A stretch of 64,000 bases of DNA, taken from assembly GCF_048593235.1 (NCBI RefSeq), contig NC_133622.1, positions 247,322,055 through 247,386,054 on the forward strand, read 5' to 3'. Every line of letters begins with the position of its first letter. Position 1 is the stretch's first letter. Under the pieces are notes generated by a model. The model did no database searches. It saw nothing but the letters and a program-made list of their open reading frames with translations, and had not been told where the DNA came from. This DNA is from Sminthopsis crassicaudata (lineage: Eukaryota). Below are positions 4,079 through 45,400 of the stretch, in pieces. A program made the translations under genes and the position numbers.

Positions 4079-4298
4079 NNNNNNNNNNNNNNNNNNNNNN
4101 NNNNNNNNNNNNNNNNNNNNNNNNNNNNNNNNNNNNNNNNNNNNNNNNNNNNNNNNNNNNNNNNNNNNNNNNNNNNNNNNNNNNNNNNNNNNNNNNNNNN
4201 NNNNNNNNNNNNNNNNNNNNNNNNNNNNNNNNNNNNNNNNNNNNNNNNNNNNNNNNNNNNNNNNNNNNNNNNNNNNNNNNNNNNNNNNNNNNNNNNNN
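4079..4298. other. Assembly gap (run of 220 N)
   Basis: Directly visible N run. Confidence 0.99.
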
Positions 4299-31999: not shown

Positions 32000-34620
32000 G
32001 TGTGCACATGAGGTATAGATAGGATAAATTGGAGGTAAGCTCAGGACTGGGAAGGGTTTCTGGTGGAAGGTGGTACTTTAGCTAGACTTGAAGGAAGTCA
32101 GGAGGCAAGAGGTGAGGAGGAAGGGCATTCCAGGCATAAAACAGCCAGTTGGGAGAATGGGAAGAGTCAAGTAGGAGGAAAATGACAAAGATAAGGAAGA
32201 AGGGAAGAAAACTGTAAAGGGAAGAAGGGGCTTGCTTGGTGATCAGGATTTTAAAAGCCAAGCAGGACTGAATATGGGATCTTGGCGGTAAAAGGGAGCT
32301 ATGGAGAAGGGACAGGATCACCAAAATGCTTCCCACAATGAAGCAGAACTTGAAGGAGGAGATGTGGCGCTCGCCACGACAGCTCCCACCATTACTGAGT
32401 TATTTGGGCAGGGCATGTCTGATAGCAAGGGGAGCACTTTCAAAAGCCCCCAAAGTGTGTTTCTATGGGATTCTATGTAGATTTTGTGAGAAAGAAGGGC
32501 TTCCAGTCACATCAAAGTGTCACTCCATTGGCAAGCCCAAGTACAGCTTCCATCCAGGAATCTGTGATCGCTTTGTTCGTTCCTTGGGTCTGTGGATTCT
32601 GCATTTTTGGTGGGAGTGAAATAATCTGTCCCAAAGGCAATACCCATGTTCTTTGGAGGTCTCAGGAGCTAGGAACCTTGTTTCCTACCTTCAAGCATTA
32701 GACACAACCTCTTCTGGACTACACAAGACATCTTGAAGTTGCCATTAAAGAGAAATAACCCTTTTCGATCCATGCTCCAAGACTGGCCCCAGACCATGTG
32801 AGCTCAGAGTTAAAGGGAGGCCTGGACCACTGATCTGGTGTAAATGTTTTGTTGTTGGTCATTTGCATCCAATACCTCAGGATCTCATCTCGAGATTTTC
32901 TTGGCAGAGATACAAGTGTTTGCTGTTGCTTTCTCCAGCTCATACGGGGAAGCTGAGACCAGCAGAGTGAAGTGACTTGACTAATAAGTACGTGAGGGCA
33001 GATTAGTGCTTCAGTCTTCCTAACGCCAGTCCTGGCACTGTTTCTACTGCGCCAGTATGAAGGAGACCAACACTAAAAGACAGCCAAAGTCCAAGTGACC
33101 CGGTCAAGCTCTTCACAACGTGTGGGACACCCTCTGCTCTCATATCCATCTCTGATTTCTTGCCTTTTCTCAAAGCCCAGTCCCAGCATAGTCTTACCTG
33201 AAGGAGGTGTCGTGTCCTTCCAGCCTGTGCCCTTAGAAGCTACTTTGTGCTTGCTTTGTAGAGATTTTGGTGTTTATCTGGGCATATGGCGTCTCCCTCA
33301 AGAGAGTCTAACTGTCTTCTAAAAGTGTGGGTTGTTTTCTTTGTACTTTTGTATCTCCAGCATTTAGCCTAGTGCCTGGGACATAGCAGGTGCCCCAAAA
33401 TGCTTGTTGAATGAAGAAGTGGATAAAAAGGGTTTAGGTTCTACCTTTACAGATAACCCAAATGGGGTTATCTCTCCCTCTCCCCCTCTCCTTTTGTCTT
33501 CTTTTTTTTTTCTCTCCTCCCTCTAGTTCATATTCCTTATTCTTATCCTATTTTTTCAGTCAATCAACAATTTTTATTAAGAACTTGCTATTTTCCAGAA
33601 ACTGAACAAGGTATTGGGAAAACCAGAACAAATTATGAACTAATTGCTACTCTAATAGGGATGGAAGGTTACATTCTAATGAGGGAGAGAAGTATGTATA
33701 AAAATATAGACAGCATAAATGTAGACAAATACAGTTATATACAAAGTATTTAAACGAGTTCAGGTGGGAGGGCACTGGTTGTCAGGAGATCAGGAAAGCC
33801 TCCATGCAGAAGACAGTATTCTGAAAAGGGATCCATAGCTTTCATCACATTTTCAAAGGGATCCATGTTACCTTTTTTGTAAAAGGTCAGGGTAGAGGGA
33901 AAAAAGAAGAGAAGGAAATAAGCATTTATATAGTACCAACTATGTGCCGTGCAACTATGTGCTTTACAAAGATCTCATTTGATCTCATAACTGGAAGGTA
34001 GATTCTATTATCTCCATTGTACAGAACTGAGGCAAATCAGTGAGTTGCCAAGGTTCATAGAGATAATTTTTTGAGGCTAGTTTTGAATTCAGTCTTACTG
34101 ATTCTAAGCCCAAAGTTCTAGATACTTGAGCTACCAGCTGCCTCAGGACCCAAGAAAGAACTTGAGAATGGCCACATTTAGAGAGGGGATAACACAGGTA
34201 TTAGTTTAAAGAATTAGTAAAGGAGATTGAGAAATCATCAGACAGGCAGAAAAGAGTGAAGAGTTTCCAGAAGATGAAGTTGATTACTTCAAATCCAGCT
34301 GATGAGTTAAGAGATGAGAAAAGACCATTGAATTTGGCAATTGGTAACTTTAGCTAGAACCACAGGAGATGAGGAGGAAAGCCAGATTGCTGAAAGTGGA
34401 GGAGCGAGTCTCCTTCCCTCGGAGATTCCCTCCAATTAAATGTACCCTGTATACCAAGGGAGGCTGAAGATTGAGGGAAGGATCACAATCTGCTGGAGAA
34501 GACACCGAGGGATGGCATCCAGTATTGAAAGAGGTATTTATTGGCTTTGGCAAGAAGGATGTCTTGGGGAAAGGAGGAAAGCATGGTCATGAGATGGAGA
34601 CAGCAGGGAGCTGCCTCAGA
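32000..34620. mobile_element. Cluster of old L2 and CORE-SINE fragments
   Basis: L2-like purine-rich antisense segments (32.0-32.3 and 34.2-34.6 kb), L2 3' ends at about 33330-33420 (+) and 33560-33800 (-), MIR-like segment at about 33920-34140. Confidence 0.5.
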
Positions 34621-36454
34621 ATGGCCTCCATTTTTTTTTTTTTTTTAGTAAAGCAGGAAACAGGGTCCTAAATTTGCAAGTGTAATTAAGACCTGGCAAG
34701 TATTCAAACCACCTGAAGTGGTTTGTTCTGAGTGAAGAGACTCAGATCTTGCTTTTGAATAGTTATGATCACCCTTATAGGGAAGTACTTTGGAAGGATC
34801 AGAGCAGGCATGAATGTCCTGTAACAGGTTCCAGTTGATCAGCCAACATGATTGGGGGAAGACTTGTTTTACAGGTTTTGACTCTAGAAAAGATTGTGTC
34901 TTCAAAAAATCCCGACTCATTATTGCTTCATTCCTGGAGGGACTCTGTGACCCTCATCAAGAATGATTCCAGGGAGTAAAATGAAGGGTCAAAAAGCCTC
35001 CTACCTACCCTCTCCTCTGGCTTGTTCATCTCTATTCTAAGGAAAGGGAGTAGAGCCTCTTATTTAGGTGAGGAATGAGAGTTATAGGAATCCAGGCATT
35101 GCATGTTGAAATCTAGCCCAGGTGTTGTCCAGCCTGGCATCAGTGCCCCAAGGAGGGACCTTGGAGACTCCACGTCGACAGGACGTGATCTTGGTGTGGC
35201 TTCTGCTGTGAAGTCACTTAAACGAAGCTCAGACGGCCCTACTAGACATTGTGGAAGAGAAGAGGGAGGGAGAGTGGATGGTGGGGAAATGTTTCTCGAT
35301 GTTTGCTCTTGCTATATTTTCAAAGTAAACATCCCTCTGTAAAAGCTGATCAAGGTTAACTGGTTAAACAGAACTGGGATGCTGGTCATAGCCCTTAAAA
35401 TGAGGGAAATGCTGCTGGTGGGACTCCTGCTGCTGGCAAAGAAAACAGATATTCCCAATCCCCTGAGGTTGGAGAGAGATGGACCTTCCTGACTCCAAGA
35501 GAGAAGATCAAAGTGTATAAATACATTACACAAAATTGCTACATCTTTAATCCATTAACTGATTTCTCAGCCTTTTCTTTTTGCTCAACTCCTTTAGTTG
35601 TCTAGACTTGAATAATAATCAAGGTTACTGGCTGTAAAATTTATTAGAGGAGCAATAAAAAGCAAATATGTAAAGAATAATTTGACACGGTAGCGACTTT
35701 AGCACATAAAGTTCTCTTTAACCATAACTCTAAGCGCTATCTTAGGTCTGGAAACAAAATCTCACTTTTGCCTCTCTATCTGCCTTTAAGACTCAGCTCA
35801 AACCACTTCTTGAGACCCTTCTTAATGATTAGTGTCCTTTCTCTCCTATCCCCCAAATTACTTTTATTTACAATATGCATGTTGTATTTACTTTCTCTTT
35901 ACCTGAATCCCCAAGTATTGCAATATTGCAGGTAGAATCTAAGCTCCTTGAGGACGGGGCCTATTTAGTTTTTGCCTTCTCATTATAGCAAACATCTAAT
36001 AAATGCTTGTTGATTTTAAGGAGGCACAGATTTCCTTGGAAGATGCAATTTCTTTTTTTTTTTTTTAATTTTTATTTTTTAAAACTCAGACTCCTGTCCC
36101 TTGAAATCCCTTCACCTTCCCCCTGAGTTCTCATAAGAAATAAGACCTTACTCATTTTCTCCCCGCCCTGGCTTCAGCCATCACTGGATCCAGTAACTCC
36201 AGAATTACATTTGAACTCTGTCTCCTCATCCAATGGCAAACTGACACTCCAAGATTCCATCACTTCTGCATGTCACAGTCACATTAGCTATAATGTCTCT
36301 GCAAGAAAGGATTGAAACTGGCTCTGCACCTGGGAATAAAGGCAGATAAGGAAAGACACCTCCCTTCCCTCGGCAGAGAGCATTCTGTGGCTGTGGAATA
36401 CAGCTCTGTAGGGAAAGAACCTCAGAGTGAAGATGGGCTGTACTTCAGGGCCTC

Positions 36455-36460
36455 TTTATT
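36455..36460 (-). terminator. Candidate polyadenylation signal of the Tigger-derived gene
   Basis: TTTATT on +, about 495 nt downstream of the stop at 36954. Confidence 0.45.
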
Positions 36461-36953
36461 TTGAGGTGGACGTTGGAAAGTGTAAAGACAAGGAGCACCA
36501 AGCAGTTTTTTTGTTGTTTTTTTTTTAAGGCTGTAAGCTCCTGGAGGACAGGGGCAATGCCATTCTTCTCTGCTGGCTGGCTCTTCCTCAGTACTTAATA
36601 AATGCCAGCTGATTGGTCCATTGTCTGTTTTATCCCTGTGCCCCCCCCCCAAACTCAGGAGCCTTCGCGGAGAAGCCTTTTTATAAAACAGCCAATTATA
36701 CAATAATTGGATCTACGTGTTCCTAAAAACCACCCCCTTCCCCTATGCAAAATAGAGCCATAAAAGCCACAGGACCTATGGGGGAAAGGGAGTTAAGGGA
36801 ACCCACTCAAAACTTTGTAGGTAACACATTAAAAAAAATAGAAACATAATTTTTTAAAGGGTGGCACAGTTTTACACACGTTAAATGGCACTTCACCTTG
36901 AAAGAGACCTGAAGTTTGCTGGCTGAAGCGGCTTAGATCCGGAGGCCTGCCAG

Positions 36954-38687
36954 CTATTGTGGAGTGACAGAGCGAGGGGTGTCCAATGCCTGGCGAGCAG
37001 CTGCACCCCCAGATGTGCTCGGGCCGCTGACTTCTCGTCTCTTAAGATACACATAGGATTTCTGCTGCTTTGCCAGCCTCCGCCTCTCGTACTGAAGGCG
37101 CCAGTAGGGTTCCAAATTGGTCCGGATGCCACGAGCCACTATCCTGCTGCGCTCAGCGTTGTAGTCGTTGTCCTCCAGCCACTGCAGCTGCTTTTCTATC
37201 ACCCCTAAAACGTCCGACAGCTGGGCGGTGTCCAGCTGCCTGGGAGCCGCCTTCGGGCTGTCTTCCTCGTCCTCGTCCTCGGCCTCCGCCTGGCCTTCGG
37301 CAGCCTGCTGCCGCACGTCCTCAGAGGACAGGTGGTCAGGGGGCGCCTCCAGAAGCTCGTCCACGTCCTTCTTCTTGACCCCCTCAAACCCAACTTGTTT
37401 CGCCAGATCAACGCAGCTCGCTTTGATCTTTTTTAATTGCTCCGAAGGTTCGAATCCTTTAAAGTTGTGAATCAAGTCCGGGAGCATCTTCTTCCACACC
37501 CGGTGCAGACACTCTCTGGTGACGTCGTTCCAGGCTTCCACGATGATATCGATGGCCATTTTGATGTTAAATCGCTTCCAGAACTCGATCACGGTCTCGG
37601 CGTTCTCGCCTCCGGTGGCTGCGAGCAGCAGCTTAAATGTCCGCCTCAGGTAGTAAGCCTTGAACAGGGCGATCACCCCCTGACCGAGGGGCTGGATCAG
37701 GGAGGTGGTTTCGGGGGGCAGAAAGATGAATTTGACGTTGGGGTTGAGCTCGGCGATGGTCAGGGGATGGCTCGGGGCGTTATCGATAATTATAAGAATC
37801 TTAAAAGCCAGGTTCTTTTTCTTGCAATAATCCTCTAGAACGGGGAAGAACTCGGCGAAAATGTCGATGCAGACCTGGGCCGTCATCCAGCCCTTCTTGC
37901 TGTAGCGGTAGTGAACGCCGAGGCTGGCCCTGACGACGCCCCTCAAGGCCTGCGGGTTGGCCGAGCGGTACACCACGACGGGCTTGAGCTTCAGGTCCCC
38001 GCTGGCGTTGGCGCCGAGCAGGACGGTCACGCGGTCCTTGGCCGCCTTGGGCCCGGGCGCGTGCTTCTCGGCCCTGGAGATGTAGGTGCGCCGCGGCAGG
38101 CGCTTGTAGTACAGGCCCGTCTCGTCGAAGTTGAAGATCTGGTCGAGCGTGTAGCCCTCCTCCCTGACCAGCTTCTGGATGAGCGCCGGCAGCTCCTTGG
38201 CCGCCCGGAGCTGCGCGCTGGCCGCCTCGCCCAGCAGCTGCAGGCTCTGGAAGTTGTAGCGGTGCTTGAAGCCGCTGAACCAGCCACAGCTCGCCCGGAA
38301 CGGCGCCACCTCGCCGGGGTTGGACGACTTGCGCTTCAGGTCGGCGTAAATGGACAGGGCCTTGCCCTTGGCCGTCAGGAACGTGGTGCCCGAGCGCTTG
38401 CCCTCCATCCACAGGCTCAGCAGCCTCTCCATCTCCTCGATCTCCCTGGGCCGCCCCCGGATGGACTTGGCCGCGCTGGCGCCCGTGCCCGAGCGCGACG
38501 TCTCCTTGATCTTGACGGCGTTGTCGCGGATGGTGCGCAGCGTGGACTCCTTGAGGCCCGTGGCGCGGGAGATGTCGCACGTCCGCTCGTTGCCTTCGAA
38601 GCGCTTGATGATGTCCAACTTCTCCTTGATGCTCAGGGCTCTCCTCTTGCCGCCCCCCGGCAGCTTGGAGCCCGGGCGCTTGGACAT
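36954..38687 (-). CDS. Tigger/pogo transposase-derived protein (TIGD1-like, CENP-B/JRK family), probably domesticated; 577 aa, single coding exon
   Basis: Uninterrupted ORF from ATG 38687 (MSKRPGSK...). N-terminal psq-type HTH (RRALSIKEKLDIIKRFEG...LKESTLRTI), CENP-B-type HTH (FRASCGWFSGFKHR), DDE_1 motifs IFNFDETGLYYK, KDRVTVLLGANASGDLKLKP, KGWMT, IIDNAPSHP, LIQPLGQGVI, and a Tigger-type C-terminus. Confidence 0.93.
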   Translation of the reverse strand: MSKRPGSKLPGGGKRRALSIKEKLDIIKRFEGNERTCDISRATGLKESTLRTIRDNAVKIKETSRSGTGASAAKSIRGRPREIEEMERLLSLWMEGKRSGTTFLTAKGKALSIYADLKRKSSNPGEVAPFRASCGWFSGFKHRYNFQSLQLLGEAASAQLRAAKELPALIQKLVREEGYTLDQIFNFDETGLYYKRLPRRTYISRAEKHAPGPKAAKDRVTVLLGANASGDLKLKPVVVYRSANPQALRGVVRASLGVHYRYSKKGWMTAQVCIDIFAEFFPVLEDYCKKKNLAFKILIIIDNAPSHPLTIAELNPNVKFIFLPPETTSLIQPLGQGVIALFKAYYLRRTFKLLLAATGGENAETVIEFWKRFNIKMAIDIIVEAWNDVTRECLHRVWKKMLPDLIHNFKGFEPSEQLKKIKASCVDLAKQVGFEGVKKKDVDELLEAPPDHLSSEDVRQQAAEGQAEAEDEDEEDSPKAAPRQLDTAQLSDVLGVIEKQLQWLEDNDYNAERSRIVARGIRTNLEPYWRLQYERRRLAKQQKSYVYLKRREVSGPSTSGGAAARQALDTPRSVTPQ

Positions 38688-38699
38688 GTCCGGGCCGGG

Positions 38700-39046
38700 G
38701 CCGAGCGCCGGCCTTAAGCAGGGACACGGGAGCGACGGGCGGCGCCGCCGGGGCAGGGGCCGCCCACCCAACCTCCGAGGAGGACCCCCGGGGCGCGGGC
38801 CCCCGACGGCGGCGGCGGCGGTGGGCGGTCCGTGCCTGCGCGCCCCGAGGAGGCTGGGACCCAGGCTCGGGGCCGACTGCGCCGTTCTCGCTGCTTCTGG
38901 AGGACAAAGTCGCGGACTGGCAAACGCGGGGGGCGCGGCGCGGCGCCACCGGGATTCGGAGCGGACCTGACAGTCCCCGGGAAGGGGATTACCGGGGAGG
39001 CGAGGCGGGGAAAGGGAGGGATCGAAGCCCTCCCGGATTTTTTTTC

Positions 39047-39081
<35 letters not shown>

Positions 39082-39950
39082 GTAACGGGTCATAACGCAT
39101 GCGCCTAGTTGCGGGATCTAGGGCTGGGGAATGCGATGACTGGGAGGGAGAGCAATTGACGTGTGTGGGGGACTGCTTGAGTCAGGGCGCATGTGCAGAC
39201 TGCTCCTCTCCCGGGCGGGCTGCTTTCCCTTGCCTCCCGCATTGCGCAGGCGCAGATCGTCCCTGAGGCTCCCAAGTTGAGACGGCGGAGCCGGCCACGG
39301 CACGGTTATAGCGGATTCCCACGTGAAGGGACGACCTCGCCTGAGTCCGTGAGTCCGAACTGAGGCGGGGAGGGCCATCTCGGGCCGGAGAGGCGAGACA
39401 CCAGGTTACCGTGGCGGTGCGGGCTCGCGTATGCGGAGCGAGGCGCCGCGGGGTCTGGGGAAGCGTAGCGCGAGCGAGTCGGAAGAGCGGGCAGGGCTCG
39501 AGACTGGGGCCCCGTTGCTAGGCAACTGGGGGTGGCGTTGCTAGGCAACCCGGGCGCCCCCGTGGACCGCTCCCGGGGGCAAGAAGGAAGTGGGCGAGGG
39601 CGTGGGGGGAGGGGGGCGGGAGGCGCGGGGCTCGGCGATCCCCGAAACCGGGAACGCTCCGGAGGCGCCCCTACGGGGGTCCTCACGCCCGCCGGCCTCC
39701 GCCTGCGCAGCCTCCTCGCCGGAGGCGCCGCCCAGCCGGCTTTGGCAGCGCGCCCCGCGGGCGAATATAACTCCGGTGGCTGCCTGGGCTCCGGGGAGCT
39801 GCCCCCGCGACAGCTGCTGTCTGGCCCGGGCTGCCAAGGCCTGCGTCGGACGAGGGGAGGGAGGGGGGCGCGCAGGGCGTGCACCCCGGGCCTGCGGGTG
39901 GCCAGAGCCACGCCCCCGACGGCCCCCTGGGAAGGAGCGGCGGGAGGGCG
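38700..39950. promoter_or_regulatory. CpG-island bidirectional promoter between the Tigger-derived gene (-) and TMEM109 (+)
   Basis: Very CpG-dense; NRF1-type ACGCATGCGC (39095-39104) and TGCGCAGGCGCA (39243-39254); two RFX X-boxes GTTGCTAGGCAAC (39514-39526, 39537-39549); candidate TMEM109 non-coding exon 1 donor cc|GTGAGT at 39349. Confidence 0.7.
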
Positions 39951-40244
39951 GCTAGAGCCACGCCCCCATGGCTAGGGACCCCGGCCCTTTGGGAGGAGCC
40001 TGGAAGCCCTAGGGCAGACAGCCACGCCCCCGACCTGTGGGGACCCCTCCCTCCCCCTAGCGCAGCACCAGGTGGGACCTGCAGGAATGGGAGCAGAATC
40101 CTGGTCCTTGAGCTCAGTCCTCCGCCCCCAGGGCTGAGGCTCTCTGAGCCCCGGCCATTTATCGTTCAGGCGGTTTTTCGTTGTGACTTCTTGGGGGGTT
40201 TCTTGGCACAGCCACTGGAGGGGTTGGCCATGTTCTTCTGCAGC

Positions 40245-43192: not shown

Positions 43193-43565
43193 GACACTTC
43201 CCTCTTGGGAGGCCCTCAAAAGCACCAGGTTGAGGCAGCCGTATGCTGGGCTTCTGAGCCCCCTGCGGGCCGGCTCACCTCCCACTTTTGTGTGCCCACC
43301 CCCCAGAATTCCACACTAGGCACTGTCCAGGGAGCCTTGGTTGTCAGCCGAGGCTAAAGCACGGCCCAGACGCTGGCTCCATGTGGCCCCACCGGGCCCT
43401 GTGGTCTCCATCTTGAATCCCTCCCAGCCAGCATCGGGTTGTCTTCCAGAATTGGGGTTTGGGCTGTGGGCCAGCCTGGCTGACCGTCCCCGGGAAATCT
43501 CGGGGTTCCCTGGGGCTCCAAGTCTACAGTGATGCCTTTCCCCCTTCCCGCTGGCAGGCAGAGCC

Positions 43566-45400
43566 ATGCTGAGATTGGACAGCAGATTCCTGATGGGGCG
43601 ACCTGTGCCCAAGGCCCTCCTGACGGCCTTTGTGGCCTTCCTCCTTGTCCTGCACACGGCAAGTTCCCAGCAAGACTTCCAGTCAAGAAAGCAGCAGAGG
43701 AAGGACCCCCCAGCTGACTTCCTGTCCCAGACAGGGTGGGCCATTCGGGAGACCCTGGATGCCTGGATTGGGCCTGAGGTCATGCTCATGGTGGCCGAGG
43801 TGAGGAGCCTTCCCGCTGGGCGAGTGAAAGTGGCTGGCTATGGGCAACAGATCCTCTTGGGCATTTAGGGAAGATTTGGGGGAATTGGGTCAGTGTGTGC
43901 CTGGAAGGGGGACTGGTGAGGGGAGCCCATGCTGCCGCTGTGCGGTCCCTGATCCCATGTGTAGTCCCCACTTCCTCCTTTCCTCTCAGGGAAAAAGGTG
44001 GGAAAAGGGCCCAAATAAATGCCAAGCCACTTTGACCTATTGTGACTCAGACTCTTCTCTTTTTGGTAGAGAAGAGGGAGATCAGGGGACTGATCTCCCT
44101 CAAATGGGGTTCAGCCCTGGCTGATAATACCATTTAGTGGGGGAAGGGCTGGCAAGAGGTCTGCTCCTTGAGCCGCTCCACATTCAGAGCTCTTAGCCAA
44201 GGTGACCCCCTGAGCCTCCCATAATGGTCAGAGGGCAGGCCCACGATGACCTCAGCCAGAGTGCGGGCAGACAGAAAGGAAGGCTTCTGTTGGGGCTCCC
44301 GGAGCCCGTGGGCCCAGCTGTCCAGAATCCCAGGCTGTGGCTTCCTTTCCCCCCCACACACACTCCCCTGCCCCAGAGCTGGCCCCTTAGCCGGTCTGCC
44401 TGGGGAGGCCCGATGTCACCAGGCTTTGGAGCCCACGTTAATCACTGAAGGGCGAAAGACTACATTCAGTTAGGGGCTCTTACAAACCAAGATGTCCTTC
44501 CTGGCCCATCCTGGACCTTCCACCTTTTCTTGGGGGAACCTTTGGGGACCCTCCCTGCTGCAGGAGACAGGGTGGGCTTCTCTCGGGTGCCCCTGCCTCG
44601 AGTCACCTGGCTGCTCTGCTCTCTCCTAGACCTTGTCCCAAGTGCTGTGGGCCGTCTCTTCTGCCATCTCCGTGGCTTGCTTCGCTCTCTCTGGGATCTC
44701 TGCGCAGCTGCTGAGCGCCATGGGGCTGGATGGTAAGGAGGGGCCCGGGCGAATGCTCCTTGTTCCAGAGCAGCGGGCGGGCAGCAGGCCGGGGGCACCG
44801 GGCAGCTCGATCCCTGAGCACCTTGTTACTTCTCCAGCTTCTGGCTGTCCTGGCGGAGGTTCTGGGCATTCCTCCTTCGAGGGATCAGCCCCTTCCTCTT
44901 TGGCTAAAAAGGAGACCCTATGGGGGGGGGAGATCCTCTTGTCCCTTGAGTCTGTGAGGGTCCCTGGTCCTCTCTGTGGGTCCTGCTAACTCTCCCCTAC
45001 CCCTCTCACAGGTGAGCACCTCACACAAGGCTTGAAGCTCAGCCCTGGCCAAGTTCAGACCTTCCTCCTCTGGGGAGCGGGGGCCCTCGTGGCCTACTGG
45101 GTGCTGGCCCTGCTCCTGGGCCTGCTGCTGGCCCTGCTGGGCCGGATCCTGTGGGGCCTGAAGCTGGTCCTCTTCCTCGTGGGCTTTGTGGCCGTGGTCA
45201 GGTCTGTGCCCGACCCCTCCATCCGGGCCCTGATGCTGCTGGGGCTGCTGACCCTGTACGCCCTGCTGAGCCGGCTGAGCGGCAGCCGCGCCTCGGGAGC
45301 CCAGCTGGAGGCCAAGGTGCGCGGCCTGGAGAGGCAGGTGGAGGAGCTGCGCTGGAGGCAGCGCCGGGCCGCCAAGGCCAGCCGGGGGGCAGAGGAGTAG
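43566..45400 (+). CDS. TMEM109: Transmembrane protein 109 (mitsugumin-23); 3 coding exons, 241 aa
   Basis: Exons 43566-43799, 44630-44732, 45012-45400 (726 nt, GT-AG, in phase). Diagnostic SQVLWAVSSAISVA and GLKLSPGQVQTFLLWGAGAL...QLEAKVRGLERQVEELRWRQRR. Confidence 0.97.

Follow-up and report, generated by a model that had tools for sequence, protein, structure and literature searches.

The 64,000-nucleotide stretch of Sminthopsis crassicaudata DNA analysed here (the window) carries, between PRPF19 and TMEM109, an intronless gene derived from a pogo/Tigger transposase. This gene, which we call paralogue A, is very probably a domesticated transposase gene that is shared by marsupials as a whole and whose product is predicted to have a DNA-binding role. 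In the list of open reading frames (ORFs) it occupies 36954-38687 on the minus strand, with 577 codons from the ATG followed by the stop codon. An upstream TTG start would extend the ORF to 605 codons; this TTG is not used by the orthologues, all of which share the ATG and the N-terminal residues MSKRPGSK. An earlier note, made from the letters of the window, had described a stop-free ORF of 577 codons with high third-position GC and CpG retention, placed between PRPF19 and TMEM109. The description holds in each respect: the reading frame is uninterrupted, the coding sequence (CDS) has a third-position GC content (GC3) of 0.85 and an observed/expected CpG ratio of 0.90, and exon pieces of both neighbouring genes were located on either side.

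Cluster look-ups recovered orthologues of paralogue A with 86-96% identity in eight other marsupials (Sarcophilus, Antechinus, Gracilinanus, Monodelphis, Dromiciops, Phascolarctos, Trichosurus, and Petaurus), and intact orthologues are present in the four orders Didelphimorphia, Microbiotheria, Diprotodontia, and Dasyuromorphia. The window protein shares 96% identity with paralogue A of Sarcophilus and of Antechinus each, and its exact sequence was not found in the protein collection. A gene of the BRI3BP family (TMEM109) adjoins paralogue A in Gracilinanus, Dromiciops, Petaurus, Antechinus, and Monodelphis, and in Petaurus and Antechinus, the two loci whose flank extends far enough, the opposite neighbour is PRPF19. 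The DNA of the window aligns colinearly with the paralogue A loci of Antechinus and Dromiciops, and the gene occupies the same position beside TMEM109 in five species representing all four orders.

A second marsupial-wide and equally old copy, paralogue B, is 74-76% identical to paralogue A, is likewise intronless, and has the same start and end. It was found in nine species (Vombatus, Dromiciops, Petaurus, Trichosurus, Phascolarctos, Antechinus, Sarcophilus, Gracilinanus, and Monodelphis) and is positioned ~8 kb upstream of a serpin gene, on the chromosome that also carries paralogue A, at a distance of 5.1 Mb in Antechinus and 3.3 Mb in Dromiciops. DNA homology between the two paralogues is limited to the CDS (nt 62-1647) and the flanks are unshared; GC3 is 0.43-0.57 in paralogue B compared with 0.77-0.85 in paralogue A, and paralogue B has no upstream CpG island. 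Each annotated marsupial proteome contains one copy at the TMEM109 locus and one old paralogue, that is, only A and B. The paralogue B CDS looks like an isolated CpG-rich patch at loci L002 (Antechinus) and L004 (Dromiciops), with observed/expected CpG of 0.7-1.0 amid AT-rich flanks at 0.15-0.2. The decayed remnant of a B-type copy, interrupted by in-frame stops (...KKG*MTTQIC*...KKKNLAFKILIII*NSH...), lies ~1.3 kb upstream of Antechinus paralogue B, at ~8600-8850 of L002; it probably arose by partial tandem duplication and then degenerated.

The domain order of the protein is that of a pogo/Tigger transposase. The match to CENP-B_N (Pfam PF04218), the first helix-turn-helix (HTH), lies above the gathering score, and the match to DDE_1 (Pfam PF03184) spans residues 217-398 and the full profile (1-177); the E values are given in Table 1. 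Residues 12-143 align to residues 2-129 of the CENP-B DNA-binding domain (1HLV) with an E value of 1.2e-4, and Foldseek gives 30% identity to the same domain. The region of the second HTH is predicted to be helical at a high predicted local distance difference test score (pLDDT) in the AlphaFold model, and the shark and lamprey relatives of the protein do carry PF03221, the second HTH. The model that was used was computed from an alignment of 84 relatives and has a mean pLDDT of 78; an earlier model from 21 sequences was discarded because its DDE core was too poor (mean pLDDT 48). The predicted layout starts with two bundles of helices at the N-terminus, followed by an RNase-H-like α/β core, an acidic stretch at ~450-482 that is disordered, and two long C-terminal helices (residues 487-507 and 511-552, pLDDT ~83-93). 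When compared with solved structures by Foldseek, the model matches the catalytic domains of Mos1, SETMAR, and Sleeping Beauty, and overall the predicted fold resembles TIGD, JRK, and CENP-B proteins, the Mos1 transposase, and the CENP-B DNA-binding domain. For the C-terminal 98 residues a comparison with solved structures returned only a chance SH3 match (E 0.86) and no solved homologue, so that the idea of dimerisation through this region draws no support from sequence. The earlier note had claimed a complete pogo/Tigger architecture; the CENP-B_N and DDE_1 domains and conserved C-terminal helices stand, while the second HTH falls below Pfam significance and the third catalytic aspartate is replaced by Gly335.

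The signature motifs of pogo enzymes are present in the catalytic core as NFDETG (containing D188), IIDNAPSH (containing D302), and QPL-x-QG. Among the 84 aligned relatives Asp is found at position 188 in 81 and at position 302 in 83, and at position 335 in 53 of the 84; in every paralogue A sequence position 335 is Gly and the DDD triad is not intact. Paralogue B retains the third Asp in diprotodonts and Dromiciops and has Gly there in dasyurids and Asn in Monodelphis. From this distribution the residue was lost once on the stem of paralogue A and at least twice independently within paralogue B, and its retention in some B lineages indicates that A and B separated while the triad was still full. 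DDE/DDD transposases such as the Tc1/mariner/pogo enzymes depend on the third acidic residue for catalysis, and given its loss paralogue A should not transpose. Continued enzymatic use of the DDE core in a domesticated protein, for instance one that serves as a host nuclease and nicks or cleaves DNA rather than only binding it, would agree with the strong constraint on the core (dN/dS, the ratio of nonsynonymous to synonymous divergence, of 0.04-0.06), with the intact D188, D302, and surrounding motifs, and with the full DDD of paralogue B in diprotodonts and Dromiciops. We nevertheless consider such an activity unlikely, as the residue needed for it is Gly in all paralogue A proteins and was lost independently in paralogue B of dasyurids and of didelphids.

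The protein has been under strong purifying selection since before the living marsupials diverged. By the Nei-Gojobori method (NG86), dN/dS is 0.079 between the window and Antechinus paralogue A, 0.122 between the window and Dromiciops paralogue A, and 0.103 between Antechinus and Dromiciops paralogue A; the corresponding value for paralogue B of Antechinus and Dromiciops is 0.080, and the bootstrap 95% upper bounds are at most 0.16. These values are far from 1 and the ORFs are intact. A maximum-likelihood (ML) codon model (GY+F3X4) over five sequences gave an omega of 0.084. Synonymous divergence (dS) between orthologues is 0.24-0.55; between paralogues A and B it is >2.4 or undefined, and being saturated it was not used for dating. 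Among the large domains the DDE core shows the strongest constraint; residues 401-445 have a dN/dS of 0.01-0.02, and the first HTH and C-terminal helices are as listed in Table 1. Only the last ~30 residues are relaxed (0.5-0.7), every other domain being constrained. Third-position divergence in paralogue A is 0.14 in codons 1-200 (window 38088-38687) compared with 0.33 downstream (Fisher p ~1e-6), and the contrast is weaker in paralogue B (0.26 compared with 0.34). Codons 1-200 of paralogue A lie in the core of a CpG island shared with TMEM109, and the dip in synonymous divergence at the 5' end could reflect either slower mutation within the unmethylated island or an overlapping regulatory function. 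This raises the question of whether a functionless, expressed ORF could have been passively preserved in an unmethylated CpG island that overlaps regulatory DNA of TMEM109. The whole CDS lies within the shared island, the lower synonymous divergence of its 5' third is in the expected direction, and shielding of ORFs in such positions has been proposed by Kalitsis and Saffery (PMC2777200). However, shielding lowers the mutation rate and cannot yield a dN/dS of 0.08 at a dS of 0.55; paralogue B is equally constrained (0.08), yet has no upstream CpG island, and the decayed B-type fragment near Antechinus paralogue B shows what neutral decay looks like. Passive preservation is thus a very improbable explanation.

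To place the A/B pair among its relatives, predicted proteins were searched by word index (5.8 billion proteins) and by HMMER (1.84 billion representatives). The word-indexed search returned marsupial proteins at 71-88% identity, followed by proteins from a shark (59%), the whipworm Trichuris suis (58%), and lamprey (48%), whereas eutherian proteins labelled TIGD1-like are only 34-37% identical. Neither set yielded an orthologue from eutherians or sauropsids, or a syntenic one from monotremes, and the exhaustive HMMER search of the 1.84 billion representatives gave nothing closer outside marsupials. In the ML tree paralogue A is monophyletic (100/100), as is paralogue B (100/100), and the two form a clade of their own (100/99); a quick tree agrees. 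Each paralogue splits didelphids from australidelphians. The successive outgroups of the A+B clade are the Trichuris suis element, a metagenome fragment (P0134), a shark/lobster group, lamprey, and echidna. The eutherian TIGD1-like proteins fall into a separate clade beyond a long, fully supported branch, together with a marsupial fusion protein described below. The P0134 fragment is 70% identical to the window protein, and a scan of metagenome contigs for its source gave only distant relatives (31-55%), besides very short fragments. The patchy set of hosts in this clade, which includes whipworms, sharks, lobster, lamprey, echidna, marsupials, and a eukaryote known from a metagenome, hints at horizontal spread of the Tigger lineage.

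The NCBI label TIGD1-like, and the fact that human TIGD1 is the best structural match in Swiss-Prot, might suggest that the gene is the marsupial orthologue of a named pogo-derived gene (TIGD1-7, JRK, JRKL, CENPB, POGK, or POGZ). In the structure search identity is 35% to TIGD1 and at most 27% to the other named proteins (JRKL 27%, TIGD2 25%, TIGD6 23%, JRK 22-23%, TIGD4 22%, TIGD5 21-22%, CENP-B 21-23%, POGK 18-19%, TIGD3 16-18%, and POGZ 15%), compared with 58-59% to the autonomous elements of whipworm and sharks, which are therefore closer than any named gene. The eutherian TIGD1-like proteins form a separate, strongly supported clade, and TIGD1 is reportedly confined to primates and adjacent to EIF4E2 (PMC2777200), not TMEM109; orthology to a named gene is accordingly hardly credible. 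The earlier note had proposed an independently domesticated, probably marsupial-restricted gene that is not orthologous to the named TIGD genes, and the synteny, selection, phylogeny, and protein searches all speak for that proposal.

The Trichuris suis relative (L005:3458-6219, contig KL367562.1) is an intact Tigger-like transposon of 2762 bp with perfect 24-nt terminal inverted repeats (TIRs) that include the TA ends (TA followed by CAGGTAGTTCTCGTATAACGCG). No match to this TIR was found in the window, even when three mismatches were allowed, and a search for TIRs or TA ends flanking the paralogue A ORF gave only low-complexity or GC-rich chance pairs and none that is credible; the earlier note had likewise recognised none. 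That paralogue A is a recently or currently active Tigger copy, intact by chance, has next to no likelihood: in its favour stand an uninterrupted ORF, the complete order of domains, and Asp at two of the three catalytic positions, but four marsupial orders share one insertion site, TIRs, TA ends, and the third Asp are gone, orthologues differ by a dS of 0.24-0.55 at a dN/dS of ~0.1, and only two related proteins occur per annotated proteome.

Further Tigger-derived proteins were encountered in mammals. An intact echidna protein of 574 residues (P0133; L007:10001-11725, Tachyglossus aculeatus CM027602.1) is 47% identical to the window protein and has an intact DDD triad. It lies in GC-rich, CpG-rich DNA between a cyclin gene and MRPL20, indicating that it is not syntenic with the marsupial copies; with this location, its low identity, and a branching position at the base of the wider clade, outside the lamprey, shark, and whipworm relatives, it was rejected as a monotreme orthologue; it may instead have been domesticated separately in monotremes or be a young copy. 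Outside the window, marsupials also possess a fusion of a SCAN domain with a Tigger transposase (P0135 in Sarcophilus/Antechinus and P0032 in Trichosurus, 40-42% identical), which is sister to the eutherian TIGD1-like clade and represents a different transposase-capture gene.

Paralogue A is transcribed as an unspliced, colinear transcript. At least 17 RNA-labelled runs from several studies contain 89-100% of the sampled words of the ORF, and four of the runs, from four studies (X1, X4, X6, and X15), were placed on window 34400-40200. In X1 a single colinear contig of 3510 nt covers 35573-39035 without joints and with zero depth on either side, and a separate, deeper contig ends at the splice donor of TMEM109 exon 1 (39349). 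The combination of the colinear contig, its silent flanks, and the adjacent TMEM109 splice indicates an RNA pattern rather than contaminating DNA. The contigs of X4, X6, and X15 are also colinear and extend from 36086-36117 up to 38740-39035. At the 5' side the contigs break at 39035, beside an A-run (39040-39090), indicating that the true transcript start may lie slightly further upstream; the distance from the transcript start to TMEM109 exon 1 is at most ~175 bp. At the 3' side, identity between the window and Dromiciops is 0.68-0.82 through the untranslated region (UTR) to ~35990 and at most 0.53 beyond. The earlier note had proposed an AATAAA ~0.5 kb downstream of the ORF; this signal does exist, 494 nt after the stop codon at 36460, but RNA contigs and conservation continue to ~36050, and the AATAAA/ATTAAA pair at 36076/36069 fits the conservation limit better.

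PRPF19 exon 2 is located at ~26640 on the minus strand, and TMEM109 is on the plus strand with a second exon from 43559 (ATG at 43566) and TMEM109-like coding pieces at 43566, 44633, and 45032. Paralogue A lies upstream of PRPF19 on the same strand and is arranged head-to-head with TMEM109. Such a head-to-head placement at a CpG island agrees with the model of Kalitsis and Saffery 2009 (PMC2777200), who described a "promoter hijack" route for transposon-derived genes, TIGD1-EIF4E2 among them. The observed/expected CpG ratio at -1000 to +1500 relative to the ATG is 0.9-1.0 in the window species, Antechinus, and Dromiciops. Between the two divergent transcripts, at 39100-39270 of the window, there are several GCGCATGCG-like motifs, which we take to resemble NRF1 sites; such motifs between divergent transcripts are typical of bidirectional CpG-island promoters. 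At 4079-4298 the window contains a run of 220 N, either an assembly gap or a masked stretch.

Table 1. Features of paralogue A and its surroundings in the window (positions in the 64,000-nt stretch)
Feature	Positions	Strand	Evidence
CDS of the Tigger-derived gene (paralogue A)	36954..38687	-	ORF list; shared start; dN/dS 0.08-0.12
First helix-turn-helix, CENP-B_N/psq type, residues 14-60	38508..38648	-	PF04218 E 1e-7; pLDDT ~87-90; dN/dS 0.03-0.12
Second helix-turn-helix region, CENP-B type, residues ~75-148	38244..38465	-	1HLV alignment; not significant in Pfam
RNase-H-like DDE core, residues ~181-400	37488..38147	-	DDE_1 E 1.6e-40; dN/dS 0.04-0.06
Catalytic position D188	38124..38126	-	NFDETG motif
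Catalytic position D302	37782..37784	-	IIDNAPSH motif
Third catalytic position, G335	37683..37685	-	Gly in all paralogue A sequences
C-terminal long-helix pair, residues 487-552, preceded by acidic low-confidence stretch ~450-482	37032..37229	-	AlphaFold model; dN/dS 0.02 vs Dromiciops
5' UTR, at least this long, without upstream ATG	38688..39035	-	RNA contigs; sequence reading
3' UTR, ~0.9 kb; AATAAA at 36460 and 36076, ATTAAA at 36069	36050..36953	-	RNA contigs, poly(A) signals, conservation
TMEM109 non-coding exon 1, spliced to exon at 43559	39210..39349	+	X1 and X4 contigs end at 39349 and continue with the letters of 43559
CpG island over CDS, 5' UTR, and TMEM109 exon 1; shared bidirectional promoter region	37200..40000	.	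GC 0.57-0.77; CpG observed/expected 0.9-1.0

We propose that a Tigger-family element, whose closest autonomous relatives would survive today in whipworms and sharks, inserted head-to-head with and antisense to TMEM109 at its CpG-island promoter before the living marsupials diverged. The insert would then have shed its terminal repeats and the third catalytic Asp (D to G) and been retained as a single-exon host gene, transcribed from the bidirectional promoter region that it shares with TMEM109. The sister copy beside the serpin gene would have followed the same history, with the Asp kept in some lineages and lost in others. The protein would no longer transpose and is most likely a nuclear, sequence-specific DNA-binding protein, which would contact DNA through two CENP-B-type HTH domains and probably pair through its conserved C-terminal helices, as is thought for CENP-B and the TIGD/JRK proteins. 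The CENP-B-like layout of a putative double HTH, a constrained but inactive core, an acidic stretch, and a C-terminal helix pair points to such a dimeric, sequence-specific DNA binder, and relics of the ends of the parent transposon are possible target sites. A more far-reaching and doubtful suggestion is that the A/B pair, derived from a horizontally spread Tigger lineage, acts as a marsupial-specific analogue of CENP-B and the TIGD proteins and binds dispersed relics of transposon ends as a regulatory or chromatin network.

Several points weigh against the interpretation of paralogue A as a marsupial-wide, DNA-binding domesticated transposase. HTH_Tnp_Tc5 has no Pfam match at E ≤0.01 in the window protein, whose second HTH is too diverged, and DNA binding, dimerisation, targets, and biological role are all read across from homologous proteins. 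The RNA evidence consists of assembled contigs without strand information from runs labelled "RNA?", and the survey of copies covers annotated marsupial proteomes. Finally, the stems of paralogues A and B measure 0.11 and 0.09 substitutions per site, respectively, compared with a crown depth of ~0.05-0.10. Stems that equal or exceed the crown depth would, at a constant rate, put the split of A and B near or before the marsupial-eutherian divergence, and with such stems, matching the full depth of the marsupial crown, the pair may even be older than that divergence and have been lost in eutherians. Faster evolution after domestication and two separate insertions are, like an older origin with eutherian loss, possible explanations of the long stems.

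Pogo/Tigger transposases have been domesticated many times, as in CENP-B, JRK, TIGD2-7, POGK, and POGZ, and to our knowledge all of the named cases were defined from eutherians. The A/B pair is a clean marsupial-restricted example, in which two paralogues have stayed intact at a dN/dS of ~0.08 since before the living marsupials diverged and one of them, paralogue A, has been captured by a housekeeping-type bidirectional promoter. With one catalytic residue lost once in A and twice independently in B, the pair constitutes a natural experiment on the passage from transposase to host factor, and it provides a lineage-specific candidate DNA-binding regulator for marsupial models such as opossum and dunnart. 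To the specialist it is a solid and familiar kind of gene that comes as no surprise. NCBI already models paralogues A and B as "tigger transposable element-derived protein 1-like", and the gene is therefore uncharacterised rather than undiscovered; a full-text literature search found no paper describing the marsupial pair. The main survey of domesticated pogo transposases left "TIGD1L" sequences out, regarding them as akin to pseudogenes (PMC7386202), and for the marsupial A/B clade this pseudogene-like label of "TIGD1-like" sequences is not correct.

When compared with known systems, human and primate TIGD1 is the best named structural match, at 35% identity over the full length, and is likewise a single-exon Tigger-derived gene with the same domain order, placed head-to-head with a host gene (EIF4E2) at a CpG-island bidirectional promoter (PMC2777200). 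It differs in belonging to another Tigger lineage in a separate clade, at a different locus and in a different host lineage, whereas the marsupial gene predates the living marsupial orders, is accompanied by an ancient paralogue, and has Gly in place of the third catalytic Asp. CENP-B resembles the marsupial protein in its pogo origin, in an N-terminal DNA-binding region whose double HTH (1HLV) aligns with it, in a DDE core that is inactive, and in having an acidic stretch followed by helices at the C-terminus; it represents an independent domestication, the overall identity is low, and the marsupial C-terminal helices match no solved structure by sequence. The Trichuris suis element and the shark copies are the closest full-length relatives, in the same clade and with the same domain order. 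In contrast to the marsupial gene, the Trichuris element has perfect TIRs with TA ends, an intact DDD triad, and several related proteins in the genus. Paralogue B is the nearest comparison: it resembles paralogue A in sequence, gene structure, ends, marsupial-wide occurrence, and constraint, and differs from it in its locus and unshared flanks, its lower GC3, the absence of an upstream CpG island, and a third catalytic Asp that is variably kept.

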